A stretch of 64,000 nt of DNA, taken from positions 124,001 through 188,000 of the IMG/VR virus record IMGVR_UViG_3300010399_000031; one strand, given 5' to 3'. Of this stretch, positions 3,168 through 60,214 are shown piece after piece. Made by a program: the position numbers and the translations under genes. Numbering within the stretch: position 1 is the stretch's first letter; each line of letters begins with the position of its first letter. The notes below the pieces were generated by a model. That model was not told the DNA's origin. It saw nothing but the letters and a program-made list of their open reading frames with translations, and searched no databases.

Positions 3168-4562
3168 ATGGACATCCAAGATTCCGCACTGTATCGCGAG
3201 ATCAACGCTATCCTCAGTAGCGGGGTTAAGCCCGTACACTTCGCATGGGCGGCAACAGTGCACGCGAATGGGAAGAACATTCGGGCGATGAAGTTAAGAG
3301 AGATGGACATTCAGCGCGACTATGAAGTTAACTATTCGGATGACATCCATGTTCTATTGGTATTTCCAGCGGGGGATTTCTGGGCCGATATTTACCCGTA
3401 CCATGATAACCTGGAGGTGACGATCTATAAGTACCCTTTATCCGAGGTTGGAGATGCCGCTGATAATAGTTCACCGGTGCAAACTGAACGCTACAAAGCG
3501 ATCTTAAGTATCGGTGATAATGGTTCTCCTTTGTTGGAGAACACGGGCGCCAATAATGATACGCGCGATACGCTCAATTTGAAAGACTTCGTACCAGTGG
3601 AGTTTCAGCTGATTGATCGCTCTCTTTACCAGATGCGGATGATGGAAGTCGGTAATAACTTTCGCAACTGTACAGTCGAGCAAGCACTAAGAGCGATTAT
3701 GACCAGTGAGTCTCAGAAGGTCATCGTCGATCAACAGCGAGTCAATCAAGGGGTGGAGATGGTACCGGCTAATAACCAAACCGTCCGTTCCACTGTCAGT
3801 ATTCCGCAAGGTACAGCTCTGACCGATGTTCCCGCTTGGATTCATCAAAAGTGCGGGGGAGTTTATAGTGCAGGCTTTGGGTACTACCTTCAAAACAATC
3901 ATTGGTATATCTATCCGTGTTATGATCCTACGCGAGTCAATAAAACCGCACCGGCTCTCACGATCATCAATCTACCAAAAAACCGCTTTGTTGGAATAGA
4001 ACGCACTTATCGACTTGATGGAAGTAATTTGGTGGTCCTTGCCACAGGAGACGTTAAATTTCGCGATCGCTCCAATGCCATGCAGTTAAACCGTGGTAAC
4101 GGGGTGCGCTTTGTGGCGGCCGACGAGTTGATTGACAGCTGGGTGACGGTTAAAAACGGCATTCCCATTGCCTCTCGTGGTAAGGTGACAACGGAGGTGA
4201 TGACCACTGCGCGCCCTGACGGAATTAATAATGCACGTGTCAGCCCCCGTGCGATCAATGCTAATCCGTTTGTGGAATATTCGGATATGGCAGCCAGAAA
4301 TGGTTCGCCGTTTGCACTCACCTGGGAGAACTCAGACCCCAGTTTAATTACGCCAGGTATGCTGGCGGTGGTAGTGTATCAGGACGGTGAATCTATCTCG
4401 CAAGTGTATGGCGTAGTGTTAAAGTCCCATACTTTTGTACGAATGCAAGGCAGCGGGATGACTAGTTCTCGACACGCAACTGATACCGCCATCTCGATTT
4501 TTGTGCAACGACCCTTGGGTAACGGTGATAATACCGGCCAAGGAGTGATCACTCTATCGTGA
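3168..4562 (+). CDS. virion structural protein, possibly baseplate hub-like
   Basis: 464 aa, GGAG RBS, beta-rich; hub call is inference only. Confidence 0.5.
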   Translation: MDIQDSALYREINAILSSGVKPVHFAWAATVHANGKNIRAMKLREMDIQRDYEVNYSDDIHVLLVFPAGDFWADIYPYHDNLEVTIYKYPLSEVGDAADNSSPVQTERYKAILSIGDNGSPLLENTGANNDTRDTLNLKDFVPVEFQLIDRSLYQMRMMEVGNNFRNCTVEQALRAIMTSESQKVIVDQQRVNQGVEMVPANNQTVRSTVSIPQGTALTDVPAWIHQKCGGVYSAGFGYYLQNNHWYIYPCYDPTRVNKTAPALTIINLPKNRFVGIERTYRLDGSNLVVLATGDVKFRDRSNAMQLNRGNGVRFVAADELIDSWVTVKNGIPIASRGKVTTEVMTTARPDGINNARVSPRAINANPFVEYSDMAARNGSPFALTWENSDPSLITPGMLAVVVYQDGESISQVYGVVLKSHTFVRMQGSGMTSSRHATDTAISIFVQRPLGNGDNTGQGVITLS

Positions 4563-4572
4563 AAGGTGATGT

Positions 4573-5448
4573 ATGAAGTTCCATGAGAAAGTCCAAGAAT
4601 TGCACAGCATGATTAATTCATGGTATCTGGATGTCCGACATGAATTAAATATGTCGGAATTGCCGCCGAGTTTGCTGACTCATCTCATGGCTCCTTCCTC
4701 TGTTGTCAAAGTTAGGGATAACCAAAAAGTAAGAAATGGTTTTTACACTTCCATGGATGGAAGTGTGCAGGTAAATGTGCTTTCGCAAGATTTAAGCACA
4801 GGACTCATTGTGTTGGAGATGACGGGTGACGTATCAGAAAATACCGATGAGCGTTTTCAGACAATGAGTCCAGGGGTGTTTTTCACGCTATTTAAACCCA
4901 ACGATAGCGGAACGTATCAAAAAGAAGAAATGTTGACTTTGATCAACGAGTCGAAAGCTCAACCTGAAGCAACGCGCCGCCACCTTCAAAAAGAGCGTGA
5001 AGAGTCATTTAGTTGGAATGCCGTGATCACTTCGCACGGTAAGATGGCTGAACGCTATTCCGAACTATATGACTCTATTTTGAAAGAAAACAAAGAAACC
5101 GTTAAATCGGACTATTTGGAGTTTTTGTTTCTGACATTTATTCTAGGGGCACACCTAGGGTTCTCTCCCCGTCACCACTTTCATGCATTGTATTCTAGTT
5201 TGTTTGCTCTGACCGATAGCACGCTAGAGCAGTGTAAGCTCACGCAGAAATACTACGATGAGCAACTCGTCGAGACCACTTACGAGGAGTTTCGATTATA
5301 CGATCCGATTTTGGAGTTCGCTCCAGTAGTGTCGTATTTCGTGGTGATGTCCACCAAGGATCAGACGGGTTTGGATAAAGTATTTTATCCCAAGGGATGT
5401 TTCATGCCGTCTCACTCGGTGGTGAGTAATCTATTACAACGGGCCTAA
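4573..5448 (+). CDS. hypothetical protein
   Basis: 291-aa ORF after AAGGTG. Confidence 0.6.
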   Translation: MKFHEKVQELHSMINSWYLDVRHELNMSELPPSLLTHLMAPSSVVKVRDNQKVRNGFYTSMDGSVQVNVLSQDLSTGLIVLEMTGDVSENTDERFQTMSPGVFFTLFKPNDSGTYQKEEMLTLINESKAQPEATRRHLQKEREESFSWNAVITSHGKMAERYSELYDSILKENKETVKSDYLEFLFLTFILGAHLGFSPRHHFHALYSSLFALTDSTLEQCKLTQKYYDEQLVETTYEEFRLYDPILEFAPVVSYFVVMSTKDQTGLDKVFYPKGCFMPSHSVVSNLLQRA

Positions 5449-18885: not shown

Positions 18886-18976
18886 TTATTTGGCGTACTC
18901 AGCAGTTGGGGGATTCCCCCAACTGCTTTTATGCCCCAATCTAATGAAGTCCCTTATCTTTCACTTGGATGTTGAC

Positions 18977-20074: not shown

Positions 20075-20104
20075 CCCCGCTCCCCGATAAGGAGCGGGGT
20101 TTAT
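20075..20104 (+). terminator. terminator ending virion block
   Basis: CCCCGCTCC-ccgataa-GGAGCGGGG-TTT. Confidence 0.75.
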
Positions 20105-20187
20105 GTCCTTAACTCCTTAAGCGAGATGTTAAATTTACATAATCCATTGATACTGTAGTGTGGGGGGGGGGCTGTTAATCTTGAATG

Positions 20188-20212
20188 TAGAATTTTTCAG
20201 ACATATATTCTT
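20188..20212 (+). promoter_or_regulatory. putative phage early promoter motif (copy 1)
   Basis: TAGAATTTTTCAGACATATATTCTT; aligns with 42204 and 54804; TATAT core recalls phiKZ early promoters (inference). Confidence 0.55.
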
Positions 20213-20280
20213 TTCGTGCGATGAGAACATCATCGATTTATTGTGACCTTATTCGAACAAATATTTCTCAGGAGTTTATC

Positions 20281-23101: not shown

Positions 23102-23142
23102 CCAAGTAGCCGCAATACCCGTTAGCTAGGCGGTTTTTCAGG

Positions 23143-23180
23143 GGGAGTACACCGAGTCCAGTGTACTCCCTTCTTTTTTT
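23143..23180 (+). terminator. rho-independent terminator
   Basis: GGGAGTACAC...GTGTACTCCC + T run. Confidence 0.7.
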
Positions 23181-23197: not shown

Positions 23198-23638
23198 ATG
23201 AAAAATAACCAAGGTATTATTACCACAAGTATGTTCGGGGAAAGCACAGTTGCAGCTTTTCGTCGGATACAGAAGGAAGTGAAAGAAGTTCAAACGCTAA
23301 CCGACCAATCGCTACATTCCATTTTGTTCAACGGCGATTTGATTCCCCACATTGGGTTTGGCAAGCTCTTTCGAATCTCACTGGGTCGACCTAGTGATAT
23401 ACTGGCTATCTCTACCCGGTATGGACCGGTGGTGATGAAGATAGCAGGTAAAGCTCAGGTGGAAGTGTTAGTCAATCGAGCGCTGGAGACATACTTGCTG
23501 TACAAACGTAGCGAGTTGAACTTGAGTTTACTTTCGACCCATAATGCTTTTGTTCAATTTGTTGGATATAAGAACAATCAGGTCGATTTTAAGAATATCG
23601 GGGAGATGGTGGAGTTAGCCCAAACCCATCAAATTTGA
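23198..23638 (+). CDS. conserved jumbo-phage hypothetical protein
   Basis: 146-aa ORF, STRYGPVV motif. Confidence 0.55.
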   Translation: MKNNQGIITTSMFGESTVAAFRRIQKEVKEVQTLTDQSLHSILFNGDLIPHIGFGKLFRISLGRPSDILAISTRYGPVVMKIAGKAQVEVLVNRALETYLLYKRSELNLSLLSTHNAFVQFVGYKNNQVDFKNIGEMVELAQTHQI

Positions 23639-23769
23639 ACTACATATCACCTTAATAGGCTGGTGTTAGCCAACAAACTTTCTCCAGCTTATTTCTCACC
23701 ATCAGCCACATTGCCACCTAGCAGCAAATATTGGGTTGCTAAGAAACCCGCTTAGAACTAAAGGAAAAC

Positions 23770-24432
23770 ATGATGTTGGAGAATAACAAGCATGGGGTTT
23801 TTGTCACATTGGAAGGCAGTGACGGCGCCGGTAAGACGTCCAATGTCTCATTCATCGCTGAGTGTTTGCGTGAGTACGGGTTTCGCATATTGACGACCCG
23901 TGAACCAGGTGGTACTCCCGTTGCTGAGCAACTGCGACATTTGGTACTCCATGAACACATGACAGATGACGCCGAGTTGTTGATCTTTGCAGCGGCCCGC
24001 GCTGACCACATCGCTACCGTCATTAAACCAGCGATGGCCGAAGGTACGGTTGTACTTTCTGATCGTTTCCACGACTCCACTATAGCGTATCAAGGTTGGG
24101 GTCGAAAGTTGCTTAGTAAGGTGCACGAACTAGATAAGTTCGTTCGGCAAGGGTTCGAGCCGGACCATACGCTTTTTTTCGATATTCCCTTTGAAGAGTG
24201 TTTGAATCGTTTATCCAAACGCAGCGACAAACAAGATCGAATCGATCAGGAAGCCATCGATTTCAAAAAGCGTGTTTGGGAAGGATACCAAAATTGCTTT
24301 AATTCCAATCGCCATCGAATGGTGCGGATTGATGCACTGAACGATCCTGAACATGTTCGTGAACAATTGCGTCGTTGGGTGCACGAGAAATTCACACCCA
24401 AGTACGAACATCTGCGCCATTTTCCGCGATAA
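23770..24432 (+). CDS. tmk: thymidylate (dTMP) kinase
   Basis: P-loop LEGSDGAGKTS, TREPGGT, LIFAAARADH, SDRF. Confidence 0.93.
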   Translation: MMLENNKHGVFVTLEGSDGAGKTSNVSFIAECLREYGFRILTTREPGGTPVAEQLRHLVLHEHMTDDAELLIFAAARADHIATVIKPAMAEGTVVLSDRFHDSTIAYQGWGRKLLSKVHELDKFVRQGFEPDHTLFFDIPFEECLNRLSKRSDKQDRIDQEAIDFKKRVWEGYQNCFNSNRHRMVRIDALNDPEHVREQLRRWVHEKFTPKYEHLRHFPR

Positions 24433-25519: not shown

Positions 25520-26206
25520 ATGTATTCACTGGGAGGAATAAAGATTCCGAGAATCAAACTCTGTGGGGCATACACCATTACCCATGTCGCATCCGGTGGC
25601 GTCTACATTGGTAGTACCCAGGATCTCCGATTACGAGAGATGCAACACCGGTGGACATTGCGGAAAAATAGACATAGAAATCCGAAACTACAAGCCGCTT
25701 TCAATAGTGATCCGAGATTGGAATTTTTCCATGTCATCACGGAAACACGGGAAGAAGCGTATGATTTTGAACAACAGATGTTGAATCATCATAAAGACAA
25801 TCCGCTGTTGTTCAATGTCGCATTGGATGCAAGAAATCCGGCTTCTAATCCGACGTTATATAGCTCAGAATCACGTGAAAAACAACGTTTGAAGTTGCTT
25901 GGTAGAAAACCTTCTGCTGAAACAAGAGCAAAATGGGTAGCGCAACGTACCGGTTTAAAAGCCCGGCCAGAAACACGTGCAAAGATGTCCGCAGCTGGGA
26001 AAAAGGTAGATAAAACAATTTGTATTAACAATCTCCTGCGGTCGAGTTTGAAAAGAAGAAAACCTATTATTGCGGGTGGTGCTCAATATCCGTCAATCAA
26101 GGATGCTTGTCGCGCTTTTAATTTAACCATCTCTGCGGTCTTGAATAGATGCAGACACCAAACGAAGTATCAGGATTGGTATTTCATTAGCCCAGAAAAG
26201 GAATAA
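25520..26206 (+). CDS. free-standing GIY-YIG homing endonuclease
   Basis: GAY-10-YIG variant, R...H, FNV; NUMOD-like repeats and C-terminal HTH (YPSIKDACR). Confidence 0.85.
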   Translation: MYSLGGIKIPRIKLCGAYTITHVASGGVYIGSTQDLRLREMQHRWTLRKNRHRNPKLQAAFNSDPRLEFFHVITETREEAYDFEQQMLNHHKDNPLLFNVALDARNPASNPTLYSSESREKQRLKLLGRKPSAETRAKWVAQRTGLKARPETRAKMSAAGKKVDKTICINNLLRSSLKRRKPIIAGGAQYPSIKDACRAFNLTISAVLNRCRHQTKYQDWYFISPEKE

Positions 26207-42203: not shown

Positions 42204-42228
42204 TAGAAAATCTCAGTTATATATTCTT
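42204..42228 (+). promoter_or_regulatory. putative phage early promoter motif (copy 2)
   Basis: TAGAAAATCTCAGTTATATATTCTT. Confidence 0.55.
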
Positions 42229-42348
42229 CTCTTGAACTGGTAGCATTATCAACTGGTTTAACACCTTTCTTAAGCTTCATTGATCGGATATCCGGGGAGT
42301 TCGATCTCTTATTTCCCCCATCCCCTTTCTCTACAAGGAAATACGAAA

Positions 42349-43035
42349 ATGAAGAAGACCCACATCTCCCTGTTTGCAGCTGTTCTGATTTCCGCCGCTT
42401 TCGCCGTCCCCGCTTTCGCCGATGGTAGCCAAGCGCCGGGTACCAGCGTCACGGCTGCGGGCGGTGGAGTCGGTGTGGCCGGGGCAGTCGGCGCGGGTGT
42501 TTTCGGTATCAACAGTAACAGCAACAGCTCGGTGAACGGCGGCTTCGGCGCATCGCTGAATGCACCGGGTTCGGTGAACGGCGGCTACAGCGCCGGCAAC
42601 CAAAGCTATGCCAACACGTCGGTCGGTTTCGGCACGGTTACGGCCAACACCACGACGGCAAGCAACACGGTCACCACGGGTAATCCGGCCGGCACGTCGG
42701 TGTCGAGCGGCTTTCAACAATCGACGTCTTCGGGTCTGTCGGTCGTGAGCCAATCGGGTAGCGAAAACTACGGTACGGAAAACCTCACCACGGCAGGTGC
42801 GGGTAAGTCGGGTTTCGGTTCGTACGCGAGCGGTTCGGGCGACGCCAAAACCCAAGGTATCGCTGTGGTGGCCGGCACAGGTTTCGGTGGGTTCGGGGGT
42901 TTCGACAACAGCAATTCGTCGGCACCCGTTACGGTTCCGTCGACTAACACCGGTAGCCAAGGTGGTAACGGTGGTCAAGGCGGTGACAACGGTCAGGGTA
43001 ACAACGGTAACGACAACGGCCATCATCACGGCTAA
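42349..43035 (+). CDS. secreted Gly/Ser/Asn-rich low-complexity protein
   Basis: Sec signal MKKTHISLFAAVLISAAFAVPAFA; AAGGA RBS. Confidence 0.75.
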   Translation: MKKTHISLFAAVLISAAFAVPAFADGSQAPGTSVTAAGGGVGVAGAVGAGVFGINSNSNSSVNGGFGASLNAPGSVNGGYSAGNQSYANTSVGFGTVTANTTTASNTVTTGNPAGTSVSSGFQQSTSSGLSVVSQSGSENYGTENLTTAGAGKSGFGSYASGSGDAKTQGIAVVAGTGFGGFGGFDNSNSSAPVTVPSTNTGSQGGNGGQGGDNGQGNNGNDNGHHHG

Positions 43036-43158
43036 GTCGGTCAAGGGCCGATGCAGTAGAATCAAAGCACGCGTCATACGCGTGTCTCGTTAGAATCGCA
43101 CCGGTGGGAGCGATTCCACCGGTGCTCTTTCTCGAATGAAAAAGAACTAGGACCGGAA

Positions 43159-43779
43159 ATGAAAATCTATAAGCTCTTCGTCGCAGCGCTCTTCTCCCTG
43201 AGCGCTGCAACCTGTTTTGCGCAAGCCAACGGTACCATCACCAATGGCACGAATTCCAACGCACAACAGGCGGTGAATGTCCATAATACCGTGGACTTTC
43301 CGTCGGGTGGTCCCTCTGACGTGACGTACCATGGTAACTACACCGTGAAATCTGCACCGACTGTCTATGCGCCGTCGCTTACGGCATCCATTACCGAAAC
43401 CTGCTGGGGTTCGGTCTCGGGTGCTGTGTCGGCCGTGGGCTTCGGAATCACGGGTGCGGCAACCATCAAAGACTATGATTGCAATCGTCGTCTGACGGCG
43501 GCAGTAGCCGGTAAGATGGGTCGCATGGATATCGCTTTCAATCTGATGTGTCAGGACGATCAGTTCCGAGCAGCCGCAGCCATCACCGACAAGCCGTGTC
43601 CGTCGGGCGCGGTAGAAGGTAAGCAAGGCACTCAAATCGTTCCGGCAGCAAAAGATGCGAAGACAGCCGAGAAGAACGGTAACCTGAAAGCGGATAGCAT
43701 CGCATCGACACCCAAGACGGTGGTCGATCCGAAAACCGGCCAAGCAACATACAGCGTGGCCGATACGTCCGTCAAGTAA
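43159..43779 (+). CDS. secreted Cys-motif protein
   Basis: signal peptide MKIYKLFVAALFSLSAATCFA; APSL...TCWGS.SG...GFG...D..C. Confidence 0.75.
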   Translation: MKIYKLFVAALFSLSAATCFAQANGTITNGTNSNAQQAVNVHNTVDFPSGGPSDVTYHGNYTVKSAPTVYAPSLTASITETCWGSVSGAVSAVGFGITGAATIKDYDCNRRLTAAVAGKMGRMDIAFNLMCQDDQFRAAAAITDKPCPSGAVEGKQGTQIVPAAKDAKTAEKNGNLKADSIASTPKTVVDPKTGQATYSVADTSVK

Positions 43780-46388: not shown

Positions 46389-46514
46389 ACTAAGATGGGG
46401 TACTCCAGTGAAAACTCACTGGAGCGCTCCCTCATATGCCGTAATGTAGTCATTTTCAATGATATATCATGTCAACGTGGATCAAGCAATCCCGCTCTTA
46501 ACTGGAGAAAGTAC

Positions 46515-54119: not shown

Positions 54120-54746
54120 ATGAGAATCCCGATCGATAGTGTTTCAAAGAAACCGGTGTGGTGGGCGTGGGGAGATGGCGGTCACAAAGTTGTGAGTGAC
54201 TTCGCGGGTAAGAGGATTGTAGCGGTTCAGCCTAAGGTGCCGGGTCAATTGAATAATCCGCTCCCGCAATGGTCAACAAATATGGAAGAGCTTACAGCGA
54301 TGCCGAAGAATTACTCCGGCTGGGTGTTGAAGCATCATGAGAGAAAACAAACGATCGAGGAGTTCAACCAAGGAATAGCGGTAGTCGAGTACGACTATGC
54401 TTACTTCTTCCTGCGTCGTCTCGAAGATGTAACTGAAAATCGCATCGTTATCAAGCTCAACAACGTACAGCTTTACGAGATGCGCAGCGCCCGTAAGAGT
54501 TTTCTTGAATTGACTGACAAGGAAGACGATGAATTGGTCAAACCGATGCTCACCTCAGAGGTTGCACTTTACGATGAAGATTTGAAATTCATCGGAAGTA
54601 TCAATCCTTTTTATTCTATCAATAGCGGTGGGTTCGATTCGATAGAAATCTTGATCGATACTCGCAGCGCCGAGCAGATTGCAGCAAGCGATGCTGCGTG
54701 GGAGCGTAGTGAGCGCGAGCGGGTAGCGCGCGGTGCGTTGATGTAA
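54120..54746 (+). CDS. hypothetical protein
   Basis: GAGGTG RBS, 208 aa. Confidence 0.65.
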   Translation: MRIPIDSVSKKPVWWAWGDGGHKVVSDFAGKRIVAVQPKVPGQLNNPLPQWSTNMEELTAMPKNYSGWVLKHHERKQTIEEFNQGIAVVEYDYAYFFLRRLEDVTENRIVIKLNNVQLYEMRSARKSFLELTDKEDDELVKPMLTSEVALYDEDLKFIGSINPFYSINSGGFDSIEILIDTRSAEQIAASDAAWERSERERVARGALM

Positions 54747-54764
54747 AACGATTGACAGCATATT

Positions 54765-54795
54765 GGGAGGAAATACTCCTCCCTCTTTTTTTTTT
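54765..54795 (+). terminator. terminator insulating the array operon
   Basis: GGGAGGA...TCCTCCC + T10. Confidence 0.75.
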
Positions 54796-54803
54796 GTCTA
54801 TTC

Positions 54804-54828
54804 TAGAAAATTTGAGACATATATAACT
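54804..54828 (+). promoter_or_regulatory. putative phage early promoter motif (copy 3), array leader
   Basis: TAGAAAATTTGAGACATATATAACT, about 20 nt before first array unit. Confidence 0.55.
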
Positions 54829-54846
54829 TACTGGATTAGACTAGGT

Positions 54847-55755
54847 ATTTAATCAAACTCCAACAAACACCCAATAAGTATTAGTGTATCAAATTGCCGT
54901 AATCATCCATTGTTGGACAGTGTATCATTGAAAGAATAATCACTCATTAGCCATTAGTGTATCAATCGCATATATTCACCCAGGTGACGTAAGTGTATCA
55001 ATCAGCCCCATTCACCCATTGGAATAAAGTGTATCAATGTCCAATAACCACCCACTGCTTACTAGTGTATCACAGTGAACTAGACACCCAATCGAGAATA
55101 GTGTACCACGTTACGGTATTCACCCAATGGATGCGAGTGTATCAATGCAAGCCATACATCCAAACAAAGAAAGTGCGTCAAGATACCAGAACCACACAGT
55201 ACGAGGTAACGCATCAAACAAGGCAAAACATCCATCGTGAAAGAGTGTATCAGTCGACCCAATCACCCATTGAAGGAAAATGAGACGTATCGGATTAGAC
55301 AACCCGTGATGGCCATCGAATCAAGGACCTCAATTCATCCAGAAAAGGAAAGTGCATCAATGGAACGAAGTCGCCCAAGAGAGTAAAATGTATCAGAAGA
55401 GGTGAATCGCCCGTGGTTATTCAATGTATCAAACGGCCACAGTCACCCAGTATAGCGGAGTGCATCAATAGCAGACATTCACACAAGGTGGGTCAGTGTA
55501 TCATGGAAAGTTAATTACCCATGGCATGAGAGTGTATTAGAGGATCAAAGACATCCAATCCCAAGCAATGTATCATAGTAGGGAATTCACCCAGTTGGAA
55601 CAAATGTATCAAAATGTCGTATTCACCCATTCTTTGAAAATGCACCATCACCCCTTATTCATCCACCAAAAGGAAGTGTATCAAGAAGCACAACTCACCC
55701 ATTGGGTTGTAGTGTATCAACAGCAGCAATTCACCCAATGCGATACAGTGTCGCC
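54847..55755 (+). ncRNA. TIGR-like dual-repeat guide RNA array (25 x ~36-bp units plus partial terminal repeat)
   Basis: period 36 nt: ARTGYATCA - 9-nt spacer - A(T/A/G)TCACCCA - 9-nt spacer; repeat A starts at 54883, 54919, 54956, 54992 ... 55675, 55711, 55747; reading frames interrupted by stops; directly 5' of Nop-domain gene. Confidence 0.88.
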
Positions 55756-55812
55756 CACCACGACACACTAAGAAACCATTTTTATTCGAACTAAAGAAAG
55801 GAATAGAGCACC

Positions 55813-57093: not shown

Positions 57094-57468
57094 ATGAGCA
57101 TCAAAGAACTTCTGGAACCGTTTCAAGTCGACGCTGAACAGCAACCGATTACACCCGAAGTGTTTTTTGCACGAAGCTTTCAAGTCGCATTGAGGGACCT
57201 GAATATCACTTCGGTGAAATGGGACGAACTGATGTCGGCGTATCTGGAGAAACACTTCGCTGCACAAGGGGTGGTGGCAACTCGTGCAGATATTAAATCT
57301 GCACGAGCAAACCTCTCGAAGCAACTGTGCGAACTGAACATGTCGTGGAAAGTCTATCTGAAGGGCATGGAAATGCTCGGCTTCGATATGGTCAATATCC
57401 GACTTGCTGGCGTCAAGCAGGAAGAGGTCCAGACTACCTTGGGATTAGCGGTTAAGCTTCCTCAATAA
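57094..57468 (+). CDS. conserved jumbo-phage hypothetical protein
   Basis: GAGGA RBS; ANL.KQL...NMSWKVY.KG motif. Confidence 0.65.
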   Translation: MSIKELLEPFQVDAEQQPITPEVFFARSFQVALRDLNITSVKWDELMSAYLEKHFAAQGVVATRADIKSARANLSKQLCELNMSWKVYLKGMEMLGFDMVNIRLAGVKQEEVQTTLGLAVKLPQ

Positions 57469-57490: not shown

Positions 57491-57520
57491 GAGAGCTTCG
57501 GCTCTCCCTTTTCTTTTTTT
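57491..57520 (+). terminator. terminator GAGAGC-TTCG-GCTCTC (copy 3) closing array/tas operon
   Basis: hairpin plus T run. Confidence 0.75.
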
Positions 57521-57582: not shown

Positions 57583-57924
57583 ATGAGTGAGAGAAAGTTG
57601 TTTGGAATCGGTCAACGTGTGACCCACTTCGACGGGGGTCCAGGTACGCATGGTAAAGGTACGATCGTCGCTTATAACGGTGTGAAGCCAGATAGCTATG
57701 CGGCTAAGAATCCCGCTAAGGCAGCTGAATTAGTGGCTGGGTGTTTTACTGACCCGAAACTGAAAGAAGCGATGGCGGGCGCTTTGGTCAACAGCTTCTA
57801 CGATGGTGATCGATATCCCTACGTCGTACAGTGGGATCCGCGTGTCGACGATAGCGACATCGCGCGGAAATACCCGAATGGGTACAAAGACGTCTACGGT
57901 GACGAACTCAAACCCATCGAGTGA
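57583..57924 (+). CDS. hypothetical protein
   Basis: AAGGGA RBS, 113 aa. Confidence 0.7.
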   Translation: MSERKLFGIGQRVTHFDGGPGTHGKGTIVAYNGVKPDSYAAKNPAKAAELVAGCFTDPKLKEAMAGALVNSFYDGDRYPYVVQWDPRVDDSDIARKYPNGYKDVYGDELKPIE

Positions 57925-57950
57925 AAAAATCTTCGATTGACGACATAAGT

Positions 57951-57972
57951 GGGGACTCCGTAAGGAGTCCCC
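57951..57972. terminator. bidirectional hairpin between convergent genes
   Basis: GGGGACTCC-gtaa-GGAGTCCCC. Confidence 0.7.
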
Positions 57973-57977
57973 AAACG

Positions 57978-58727
57978 TTACTCTATCGACGTAACGCTCC
58001 AGAAGTCTTCAGCCAGATCTGGCGAAAGGACATAGTCGAAGGGCAGGTAGAAGTAACCATTTTCACCCCAGCCCGATCCCCAGCTATTCCTAATAATGAA
58101 GAGACGCTTGATGCGATCGTAACCGACGATCAACACGGCGTGACCACCCAAGCATTGTTCCTTGTTCACATCGGGCATGGGTACCAAACCGCTGGCTGCC
58201 ACTTCGTCCGATTCGAGCGAATCGTAGACGTAGATGCCAAAGGCGATCGGGTAACCCGATGCAAGCGCGTGCAAAAGGTCGTCTTCGGTTTGATTCACAC
58301 GGCGGTACGCAATCGCTTTGTGTTTCAAAGCGTCGTTGTACGCTTCGAGCGAGGGCTTCAGTTTGAAGTTTTCCTCGACGTACGGACACAGCGTTTCGTT
58401 GCAGGTACCCAGCTGTGCGATCACTTTGATGCCGTCGCGGATCTCGGCACCCGAGTCTTCCGTGAGTGTGCCTTCGAGACCGCGCTCGCCGTAGTAGACG
58501 AAAAGGCGCGAGAGACGAATCGGTTGCTCACGCTGTTTGTTCTCGTCGTACTCCAGCGCCCCGACGATGGCGTGGGCCGTGCACGAACCCAACTCACCTT
58601 GGTCTTCGACCGGGGAGCAGCCAGGGCGCAAATCGATCTGGTCGGGAATATCGATCGGTGCAGCTGCCGAGTATTTGTGGTCACGCGGATCGTGTTTGTC
58701 TTTGACACGATTGTACAGTCGCTTCAT
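57978..58727 (-). CDS. papain-family (C1A) cysteine peptidase
   Basis: DQGELGSCTAHA (catalytic Cys), GGHAVLIVGY (His), IRNSWG..WGENGY (Asn). Confidence 0.92.
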   Translation of the reverse strand: MKRLYNRVKDKHDPRDHKYSAAAPIDIPDQIDLRPGCSPVEDQGELGSCTAHAIVGALEYDENKQREQPIRLSRLFVYYGERGLEGTLTEDSGAEIRDGIKVIAQLGTCNETLCPYVEENFKLKPSLEAYNDALKHKAIAYRRVNQTEDDLLHALASGYPIAFGIYVYDSLESDEVAASGLVPMPDVNKEQCLGGHAVLIVGYDRIKRLFIIRNSWGSGWGENGYFYLPFDYVLSPDLAEDFWSVTSIE

Positions 58728-58805
58728 GTTTCACCTTAAGCGTAGCGTTGAAGTGGGATACTTCATACGATCGCATTAACTTTTTATATCGAGAAGGAAC
58801 AAATC

Positions 58806-59641: not shown

Positions 59642-60214
59642 TTGAAGATCATTCGCAACCCCTATTGGCGCGATGAAGAGTTAATGATGCTCACCATCAA
59701 AGACTTGGAACGCCGCCGACTACCCAGCATCGGAGTATTCGAGTGTAATCAATTGACTCGGGCAACACAAAAGGGTAGTAAGTTAAGATCGCCGATCACC
59801 TCGCTCTCTATCCTACCCGAGGATCTCCACGCATGTGTCACCATTGTGAGTGATCCAGAAGACGAGGGAAAGGAGATCGTCAGTATTCGGTTTTATCAAA
59901 AAGTGAAAGAATCACCTGATCTTGTTGTCTTAGAAGACTGGTGTATCTATATCCCTAAAGGGTTGACCCATCTTACGGAGATAGCGCACCGCGTTTCAAG
60001 TCGCTTTGCTCAATTCTTTTTCTATTACCGCGATGCATTTGATGACCCAGTATTCGTTAGAGATTGGGATCGTGTGATTTACGGTTCTTTTAGCGATACA
60101 TCGGATAGTTTAGCTGTATTTTTGAAACACAAGCAAGAAGAGGAGCAGCAAAATGATCAAGAAGATAGCACCAGTGACGGGAGTGCTGGGAGGGATGGTT
60201 CTGGAGCAACTTAA
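59642..60214 (+). CDS. hypothetical protein
   Basis: GAGGAG RBS, TTG start. Confidence 0.6.
   Translation: MKIIRNPYWRDEELMMLTIKDLERRRLPSIGVFECNQLTRATQKGSKLRSPITSLSILPEDLHACVTIVSDPEDEGKEIVSIRFYQKVKESPDLVVLEDWCIYIPKGLTHLTEIAHRVSSRFAQFFFYYRDAFDDPVFVRDWDRVIYGSFSDTSDSLAVFLKHKQEEEQQNDQEDSTSDGSAGRDGSGAT

Follow-up and report, generated by a model that had tools for sequence, protein, structure and literature searches.

A probable early promoter of a phiKZ-like jumbo phage lies directly upstream of a TIGR array

Jumbo phages that encode their own RNA polymerases all carry, before their early operons, a findable AT-rich motif of ~10 nt located near -10. Wherever it has been tested, this motif proved to be the early promoter, and middle and late promoters are unpredictable from sequence (PMC7598289). 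In AR9, the early promoter corresponds to AAATATATATTAT-(6N)-G+1, and the transcription starts of phiKZ and phiR1-37 also lie 6 nt past the element (PMC5312081). The early core of phiKZ is TATATTAC (PMC7058600); the early consensus predicted for OBP, N1M2, and 201phi2-1 is TTTCARRYAKATATTAT-(6N)-G (PMC7058600, Table 2), and the form found in OBP and N1M2 reads ...AWWWWWTTTCARRYAKATATTAT-YWAAGT-G (PMC7058600). As for the TIGR systems, their arrays are defined by alternating edge and loop repeats with two 9-nt spacers, at a period of 36 nt and beside a gene for a Nop-domain Tas protein (Faure et al. 2025, PMC12045711), and these arrays are typically closed by a terminator (PMC12045711). Whether a TIGR locus is co-transcribed is a question that sequence alone cannot settle (bioRxiv 2026.09.09.750476). 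In the literature that we searched, no native promoter is defined for any TIGR array, and no link is made between TIGR-Tas and jumbo phages or early promoters.

We analysed a window of 64,000 nt (i.e., the whole stretch of DNA considered here), which spans positions 124001-188000 within a virus record of 243,403 bp, the completeness of which is estimated at 81%. Judged by its predicted gene content, the source is an uncultivated phiKZ-like, nucleus-forming jumbo phage that possesses its own transcription machinery. One of its virion proteins is 38% identical to the counterparts of Burkholderia phage FLC9 and of Ralstonia phages RP12/RP31, and a search with this protein matched 266 phiKZ-like records; at the DNA level, the region gives only a short 69% match to cultured phages, namely to FLC9. 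The genome encodes chimallin (phrog_4795) and the PhuZ tubulin (phrog_4733), as well as an RNA polymerase beta/beta' cluster (phrog_2987, 3295, and 3015; Pfam Rpb1_2 and Rpb2_6). The beta'/beta polymerase genes are located at genome positions 76007-77491 and 87694-93171, with a beta'-type subunit directly after chimallin, an order which is presumably that of phiKZ gp54/gp55. Apart from these genes, the phage encodes a beta-type subunit of 1110 aa (phrog_3148), whose homologue in phage N1M2 bears the annotation "virion-associated". Two multisubunit RNA polymerase sets (virion and non-virion) are encoded, some subunits only being identified. The non-virion beta-type gene (G000:C1:87694-91144; L079 494-3944) is split by a 305-aa ORF (L079 1697-2614), an arrangement that we take to resemble phiKZ gp71/72/73 with their intervening endonuclease gene. 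The intergenic DNA of the + strand also contains 24 phiKZ-style terminators, i.e., GC-rich hairpins directly followed by TTATG(C/T)C (for the phiKZ terminator motif, see PMC10914365). In the window, such terminators are found for instance at 18929, 20101, 52913, and 62565, and 5 of the 24 have a promoter of the family described below located 28-102 nt downstream.

The first-pass annotation of the window had noticed a 25-nt motif at 20188, 42204, and 54804, which would head new gene blocks and whose first and third copies would follow terminators. All of this is borne out. A degenerate 25-mer pattern gives exact matches at the three places (Table 1), all of them intergenic and on the + strand. 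The hairpins end 88 nt upstream of copy 1 (20075-20099, with a TTTATG tail) and 20 nt upstream of copy 3 (54765-54783), and copy 2 is preceded by a stop codon, without a terminator. The blocks are short terminator-bounded units of ~0.9-2.9 kb, extending from 20218 to 23141-23172, from 42234 to 43098-43125, and from 54834 to 57491-57506. The annotation had also proposed a genome-wide scan; once run, it added two copies at genome 53289 and 96157, with 1-2 mismatches, so that the genome holds five copies in total, 5/5 on the + strand and 5/5 intergenic. On the - strand of the 243,403-bp genome, no 25-mer was found, and the reversed-pattern control gave none either. Two side observations concern these units. 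Between the terminator and copy 1, the window displays a run of eleven Gs (20162-20172), which could be liable to length variation or to assembly error. Behind copy 2, the unit is reduced to promoter, gene, and terminator (43098-43125) and looks moron-like; the product of 42349-43035 has a signal-peptide-like N-terminus and is rich in Gly/Ser/Asn, that of 43159-43779 has a signal-peptide-like N-terminus too, and Pfam gave no match for either protein.

Table 1. Positions, in the window, of the motif copies and of the elements of the TIGR locus
Feature	Position	Strand	Description
Motif copy 1	20188..20212	+	Predicted start G20218; heads a small-ORF unit (20281 onwards) with terminator 23141-23172
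Weaker family member, core ACATATCAC	23627..23651	+	Upstream of thymidylate kinase (23770-24432); genome 147642
Motif copy 2	42204..42228	+	Predicted start G42234; one-gene unit 42349-43035, terminator 43098-43125
Weaker family member, core ATATATCAT	46447..46471	+	Predicted start G46477; hairpin with ATATGCCGT tail upstream; gene from 46515 downstream
Intrinsic terminator closing the upstream unit	54765..54796	+	7-bp GC-rich stem-loop 54765-54783, then T-run (terminator scan)
Motif copy 3	54804..54828	+	TAGA 54804-54807; T-rich stretch and GAG 54811-54816; AT-rich core ATATATAAC 54819-54827
Predicted transcription start (G)	54834	+	6 nt past motif copy 3; next base A
Predicted 5'-terminal transcript hairpin	54834..54854	+	7-bp stem GAUUAGA/UUUAAUC; 3' arm overlaps the truncated first edge repeat
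TIGR array	54849..55766	+	~24 units of 36 nt; 20 regular, few degenerate
Array-end hairpin GUGUCG...CGACAC, 6 bp	55748..55766	+	78-nt segment, -12 kcal/mol, z -2.6
tas, TIGR-associated protein, 417 aa	55813..57066	+	TasR 9mty E 2.9e-8; TasH E 4e-6 (PDB sequence); PHROG 4285
124-aa ORF	57094..57468	+	Function-unknown PHROGs 4910 and 7801; between tas and terminator
Intrinsic terminator, predicted unit end	57491..57520	+	Stem GAGAGC-TTCG-GCTCTC (57491-57506) and T-run (terminator scan)

The pattern had been derived from the three window copies, and the 25-mer gave 0 matches in 100 dinucleotide shuffles, even at 3 mismatches. Since a shuffle test on a pattern written from the tested copies is circular, three independent checks were made, the first being the genome-wide scan given above. 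For the second, a weight matrix was trained exclusively on instances of other phages (30, taken from five records); it scores the five copies at 36-46 bits, whereas 15.3 bits is the highest value reached in 20 shuffled genomes, and it also picks two weaker sites of the genome, again intergenic and on the + strand. Thirdly, the hexamer ATATAT occurs at 22 genome loci, 18 of which fall within the 14% called non-coding (P ~1.6e-12), this 14% being our own call, obtained outside the window with a crude in-house gene caller. The motif is also conserved across phages. The exact 25-mer pattern is found in ten stretches of IMG/VR, distributed in seven other contigs. With up to 3 mismatches allowed, each of five other large phage records contains the motif 5-7 times, in every case on a single strand, the reversed-pattern control giving 0 in these five records. 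In four TIGR-bearing relatives, the core TATAT-N-AC-(6N)-GA is present 8-9 times on one strand and 0-1 times on the other, and in the cultured phage FLC9, one strand carries 14 copies of TTTNAGNNATATATNAY-(6N)-G and the opposite strand a single one. Altogether, at least ten related jumbo-phage records contain the promoter family in several copies and in a strand-specific manner. The element (A)TATATCAC-(6N)-G stands before the chimallin genes of four other records (G006, G002, G009, and G007) and of FLC9 (5/5).

In the genome under study, an iterative matrix scan delivered 20 hits, with a strand ratio of 19:1 in favour of the + strand and 18/20 in intergenic DNA. Around 16 of them are good sites, with the consensus a.Tg.Ag..aaTtT.AG..AtATAT.Ac-(6N)-G, and the 25-nt motif represents the best-conserved subset of these ~16 sites with an ATATAT-NAY core. 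Two weaker members of the family, both in the window, had been overlooked by the first reading (Table 1). Downstream of the thymidylate kinase gene, the unit also contains a homing-endonuclease-like ORF (25520-26206; phrog_314, GIY-YIG type).

The bases that follow the motif carry a signature of their own. For the start-site counts, we used 35 non-redundant instances, in which the positions +5, +6, and +7 after the motif were outside the search pattern. Position +6 is a G in 35/35 instances, position +7 an A in 32/35, and position +5 a pyrimidine in 34/35; relative to the conserved G, the ATATAT-W-M-Y core extends from -15 to -7 and is (nearly) invariant. In these 35 instances, the segment from +1 to +30 is more strongly folded than its shuffled counterparts (mean z -1.35, t -5.2), while a control segment located further downstream of the predicted starts gives a mean folding z of +0.26. 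A 5' hairpin begins exactly at the conserved G in 14/35 instances. More generally, this hairpin tends to begin at most 3 nt from the predicted first base (e.g., 54834-54854, 20219-20235, and 42232-42261), and its stem varies in sequence between the motif copies. Taken one by one, the 5' hairpins have no significance, only the family-wide trend being significant. The base conservation and the folding fit a transcript 5' end at the conserved G, and the hairpins may act as stabilisers of the 5' ends of early transcripts. On the basis of this comparative evidence, we consider it probable that the 25-nt motif is a near-consensus early promoter of the phage, of the class read by the virion multisubunit RNA polymerase.

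Copy 3 lies in front of a TIGR array, each unit of which comprises an edge repeat AGTGTATCA, a 9-nt spacer A, a loop repeat AnnCACCCA, and a 9-nt spacer B. Only ~15 nt separate the predicted start, G54834, from the truncated edge repeat that comes first. The promoter evidently serves the array, whose orientation we infer from the promoter, the terminators, and the strand of tas. The array closes with a truncated repeat and with a hairpin that was not called by the terminator scan; the nearest U-run being 15 nt further, this hairpin would be at best a weak terminator or an attenuator between the array and tas. Next to similar arrays, 30 relatives of Tas are found in viral contigs. The alignment of the present Tas with the solved TasR/TasH is confined to residues 122-194 and 356-409; its sequence gave no sign of a RuvC or HNH nuclease region, and the protein may be nuclease-free. 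A Pfam search gave no match for Tas, for the 124-aa ORF, or for six neighbouring proteins, and an Rfam search gave no family within the window. Among the 30 Tas loci of relatives, none contains a homologue of the 124-aa ORF, which, for this reason, gives no support for a conserved tas operon. On either side of the locus, five relatives lack a homologue of the upstream gene (54120-54746), and the downstream one (57921-58739) keeps its synteny with tas in G002. The nearest relative, G006, lacks the TIGR cassette, and no array was found in the 1.5 kb upstream of its 57921-58739 homologue. As a side observation, the 22 nt of the closing terminator (GAGAGCTTCGGCTCTC, 57491-57512) occur three times in the genome, also at window 34243 and 35810, and the same 22 nt, including the tail, are found upstream of the array promoter in the relative L007 (1787-1808).

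The position of the promoter before the array is shared by three relatives (L011, L012, and L007), in which a terminator, an early-type promoter, and an array follow each other in that order. In L011 (Tas 58% identical), a terminator is followed by ...CCATATATAACT-actat-G, the array, a second terminator, a second promoter copy, and tas, after which come a further terminator and a third promoter copy. The region 3380-5400 of this contig can be read as P-array-T-P-tas-T-P-gene, the array, tas, and the next gene each having their own promoter. In L012 (Tas 48% identical), a hairpin with TTTATGCCGT precedes ...CCATATATCACA-gttgt-G and the array, and a hairpin with a U-run is present between the array and tas. 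In L007 (Tas 78% identical), the order is terminator, TATATTAC-tacttt-G, and array, and the strand concerned carries nine such cores, the array promoter included, over a genome of 285 kb. On the contrary, in the closest Tas relatives (L006/L008, L009, and L010; 78-79%), a hairpin precedes the array and no promoter core is found there, the nearest one lying ~24 kb away. The early-type promoter before the array is therefore recurrent, and not universal.

How far transcription extends beyond the array is less clear-cut. The first-pass annotation had placed the array, tas, and the ORF at 57094 on one transcript ending at the 57491 terminator, and several observations go in this direction. Indeed, the matrix scan finds no family promoter between 54850 and 57500, the only clear terminator downstream of the array promoter is the one at 57491, and in L006 and L007 the array continues straight into tas, without a hairpin. 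However, the motif could well be a promoter while the array and tas form separate units, with an array transcript ending near the hairpin 55748-55766. We hold this for a serious possibility, if somewhat short of an even chance, and we give comparable credit to its corollary, i.e., that tas and the 124-aa ORF would be expressed from another promoter, for instance a middle or late one. Middle and late promoters would escape a sequence scan (PMC7598289), TIGR arrays usually end in a terminator (PMC12045711) and the present array ends in a hairpin, and L011 displays a terminator and a second early-type promoter between its array and tas, a place taken in L012 by a hairpin and its U-run. Against this separation, the window hairpin is short (6 bp), its U-run does not follow directly, and the terminator scan did not call it, to which are added the lack of an internal family promoter, the single clear terminator at 57491, and the uninterrupted arrays of L006 and L007. 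Weighing the array-end hairpin, the terminators of L011 and L012, and the unconserved ORF against these points, we regard the co-transcription of the array, tas, and the 124-aa ORF as plausible but uncertain. We give transcription through tas about an even chance, and partial read-through is the form that we favour. Hence, the initial reading is partly supported: the phiKZ-type early promoter has good support from comparative evidence, and the single transcript is only plausible.

The genes located downstream of the family sites inform on the polymerase that would read the early promoter. A family site at genome 73896 lies 74 nt upstream of chimallin and the beta' subunit, and other sites are found at 87564 before the beta cluster, at 59651 before the PhuZ block, and at 213934 before a polymerase block. 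A DNA polymerase is among the genes preceded by family sites, as are small ORFs of unknown function. Conversely, in the genome-wide matrix scan, the virion-gene blocks, including window 1-20059, have no family site, and the annotated - strand genes (tail sheath, virion proteins) no good one. Since the genes of the non-virion polymerase have to be transcribed before this enzyme exists, and since phiKZ-type phages do without the host enzyme (PMC10914365, PMC7598289), the family would be read by the injected virion polymerase. One could also imagine that the motif belongs to the middle or late class and serves the non-virion RNA polymerase, or that the two phage polymerases both use it, all the more so as continuously expressed genes of AR9 have both promoter types (PMC5312081). 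We consider this unlikely: the family precedes the genes of the non-virion polymerase and chimallin and is absent from the virion-gene blocks, and the middle and late promoters (TATG in phiKZ; AACA-(6N)-TA/G in AR9) differ from the motif and are not extended AT-rich elements (PMC5312081, PMC7598289). Within the family, the five TAGA...CAG copies can be told apart from the chimallin and polymerase promoters, the latter having the core ATATATCAC and an upstream GAAAgAAA, and from their sequence the five copies could conceivably form a sub-class with a different timing.

The host enzyme has also to be considered, i.e., the motif could be a sigma-70-type promoter used by the bacterial RNA polymerase right after injection. 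A sigma-70 promoter is made of a -35 box (TTGACA) and a -10 box (TATAAT), 16-18 nt apart, in which the key -10 positions are retained. The core of the motif holds TATATT or TATATA, copy 1 combines TTGAAT, a 17-nt spacer, and TATATT (a 9/12 score), and the predicted start would lie at a similar distance. However, phiKZ-type phages are described as transcribing without the host polymerase (PMC10914365, PMC7598289). Moreover, copy 1 alone passes a loose scan, copies 2 and 3 failing it, and the hexamer ends in A in 3/5 copies. The most conserved bases (TAGA and CAG) would be in a non-specific spacer, no -35 box is conserved in the 35 instances, and the architecture is kept across phages of different hosts. 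Taken together, these points make a reading by the host polymerase highly improbable. It is just as improbable that the repeat is not primarily a promoter, but a protein-binding or regulatory site or a module-shuffling recombination cassette, like the PeSL cassettes of T4-type phages: the terminator, motif, and hairpin do recur at the borders of variable, moron-like units, and the nearest relative does lack the TIGR cassette, but the strict strand and gene orientation, the fixed YGA at +5..+7, the sites before essential early genes, and the match to the experimentally verified early promoters of AR9 and phiKZ argue against it, and a recombination role would be additional to the promoter function, not an alternative to it.

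With the motif read as an early promoter of the virion polymerase, the expression of the locus could proceed as follows. The injected polymerase would recognise both the ATATAT-W-M-Y core, which is AT-rich and has its centre near -11, and the upstream T-rich/CAG and TAGA elements, and would initiate at the conserved G 6 nt downstream (window 54834). The transcript would first form a short 5' hairpin and, after ~15 nt, enter the TIGR array. The resulting pre-tigRNA of ~0.9 kb would be cut into 36-nt guides, as in other TIGR systems, and transcription would probably proceed, at least partly, via tas and the 124-aa ORF to the 57491 terminator. With such a promoter, guide RNA production would likely coincide with the onset of infection; the more precise "within minutes of injection" of the first-pass annotation draws entirely on an analogy with phiKZ and AR9.

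One guide of the array attracted our attention. Guide 2 (array unit 2, window 54919-54955) matches the phage's own chimallin early promoter (G000:C1:73878-73897), with 9/9 positions for spacer A (TTGAAAGAA) and 7/9 for spacer B (TTAGCCATT), the two being separated by a 2-nt gap. TasR tolerates a gap of such kind, and we infer that the mismatches of spacer B, at positions 1 and 8, lie outside the seed. Over the genome, the near-matches of the guides are at chance level (2 vs 1.7 expected; 24 vs 23.4 expected). Among 30 sets of shuffled spacers, any promoter match was found in 0/30 at up to 2 mismatches and in 2/30 at up to 3, and the arrays of L007 and L012 have no such match on their own chimallin loci. 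Given the chance level of the genome near-matches and the lack of a match in these two relatives, we treated guide self-targeting as a coincidence. We judge very unlikely the broader idea that TIGR-Tas is an immediate-early function, expressed via the injected polymerase, which would act on early promoters, including the chimallin promoter by guide 2. If it held, Tas, which has no nuclease domain detected by sequence, could repress the expression of the shell protein through the guide 2 match. Such a repression would amount to self-timing, or to a block on superinfecting kin before they build their nucleus.

The promoter in itself is ordinary, in that it extends the known phiKZ-like early-promoter pattern to an uncultivated clade. 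Its type is already known, and its association with a TIGR array is not described in the literature that we searched. If the array shares the promoter class of chimallin and of the non-virion polymerase, its guides, and possibly Tas, would be made at the earliest stage of infection, and guide production would take place before or while the phage builds its nucleus. An early expression would point to host takeover or to competition between phages, not to late functions. Burkholderia phage FLC9, a cultured relative with the same promoter family, allows a concrete test.

Compared with the TIGR-Tas systems of Faure et al. 2025 (PMC12045711), the locus has in common a truncated edge repeat at the start of the array and an adjoining Tas gene. 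It differs by its ~24 units, against the usual 5-15, by the location of the array upstream of tas, and by a recognisable phage-specific promoter ~15 nt before the array. On the side of the promoters, the mapped early promoters of phiKZ and AR9 also have an extended AT-rich element near -10, their start lies 6 nt downstream (a G in AR9), at the offset predicted for our motif, their sites are also strand-specific and placed before early genes, and these phages also carry two multisubunit RNA polymerases. However, they count 32 sites in phiKZ and 41 in AR9, against ~16 in the present record, which is incomplete as estimated above, and the DNA of AR9 contains uracil. The PeSL (promoter-early stem-loop) cassettes of T4-type phages associate an early promoter with stem-loops at the borders of variable modules; they share with our motif this recurrence at variable-module borders, and differ in their polymerase and in their consensus. 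Another likeness is with OBP, N1M2, and 201phi2-1, whose consensus motifs are themselves bioinformatic predictions. The elements have the same order and spacing: a T-rich stretch is followed by CAR/CAG, two bases, the AT-rich core, and, after 6 nt, a G. The copies, in tens or fewer, likewise lie upstream of early operons. The core is AKATATTAT in these phages and ATATATWMY here, where an extra conserved TAGA is found ~30 nt upstream of the predicted start. Our motif aligns base for base with the form of OBP and N1M2, and the C of CAG is separated from the G by the same 20 nt; the promoter thus belongs to an already known kind.
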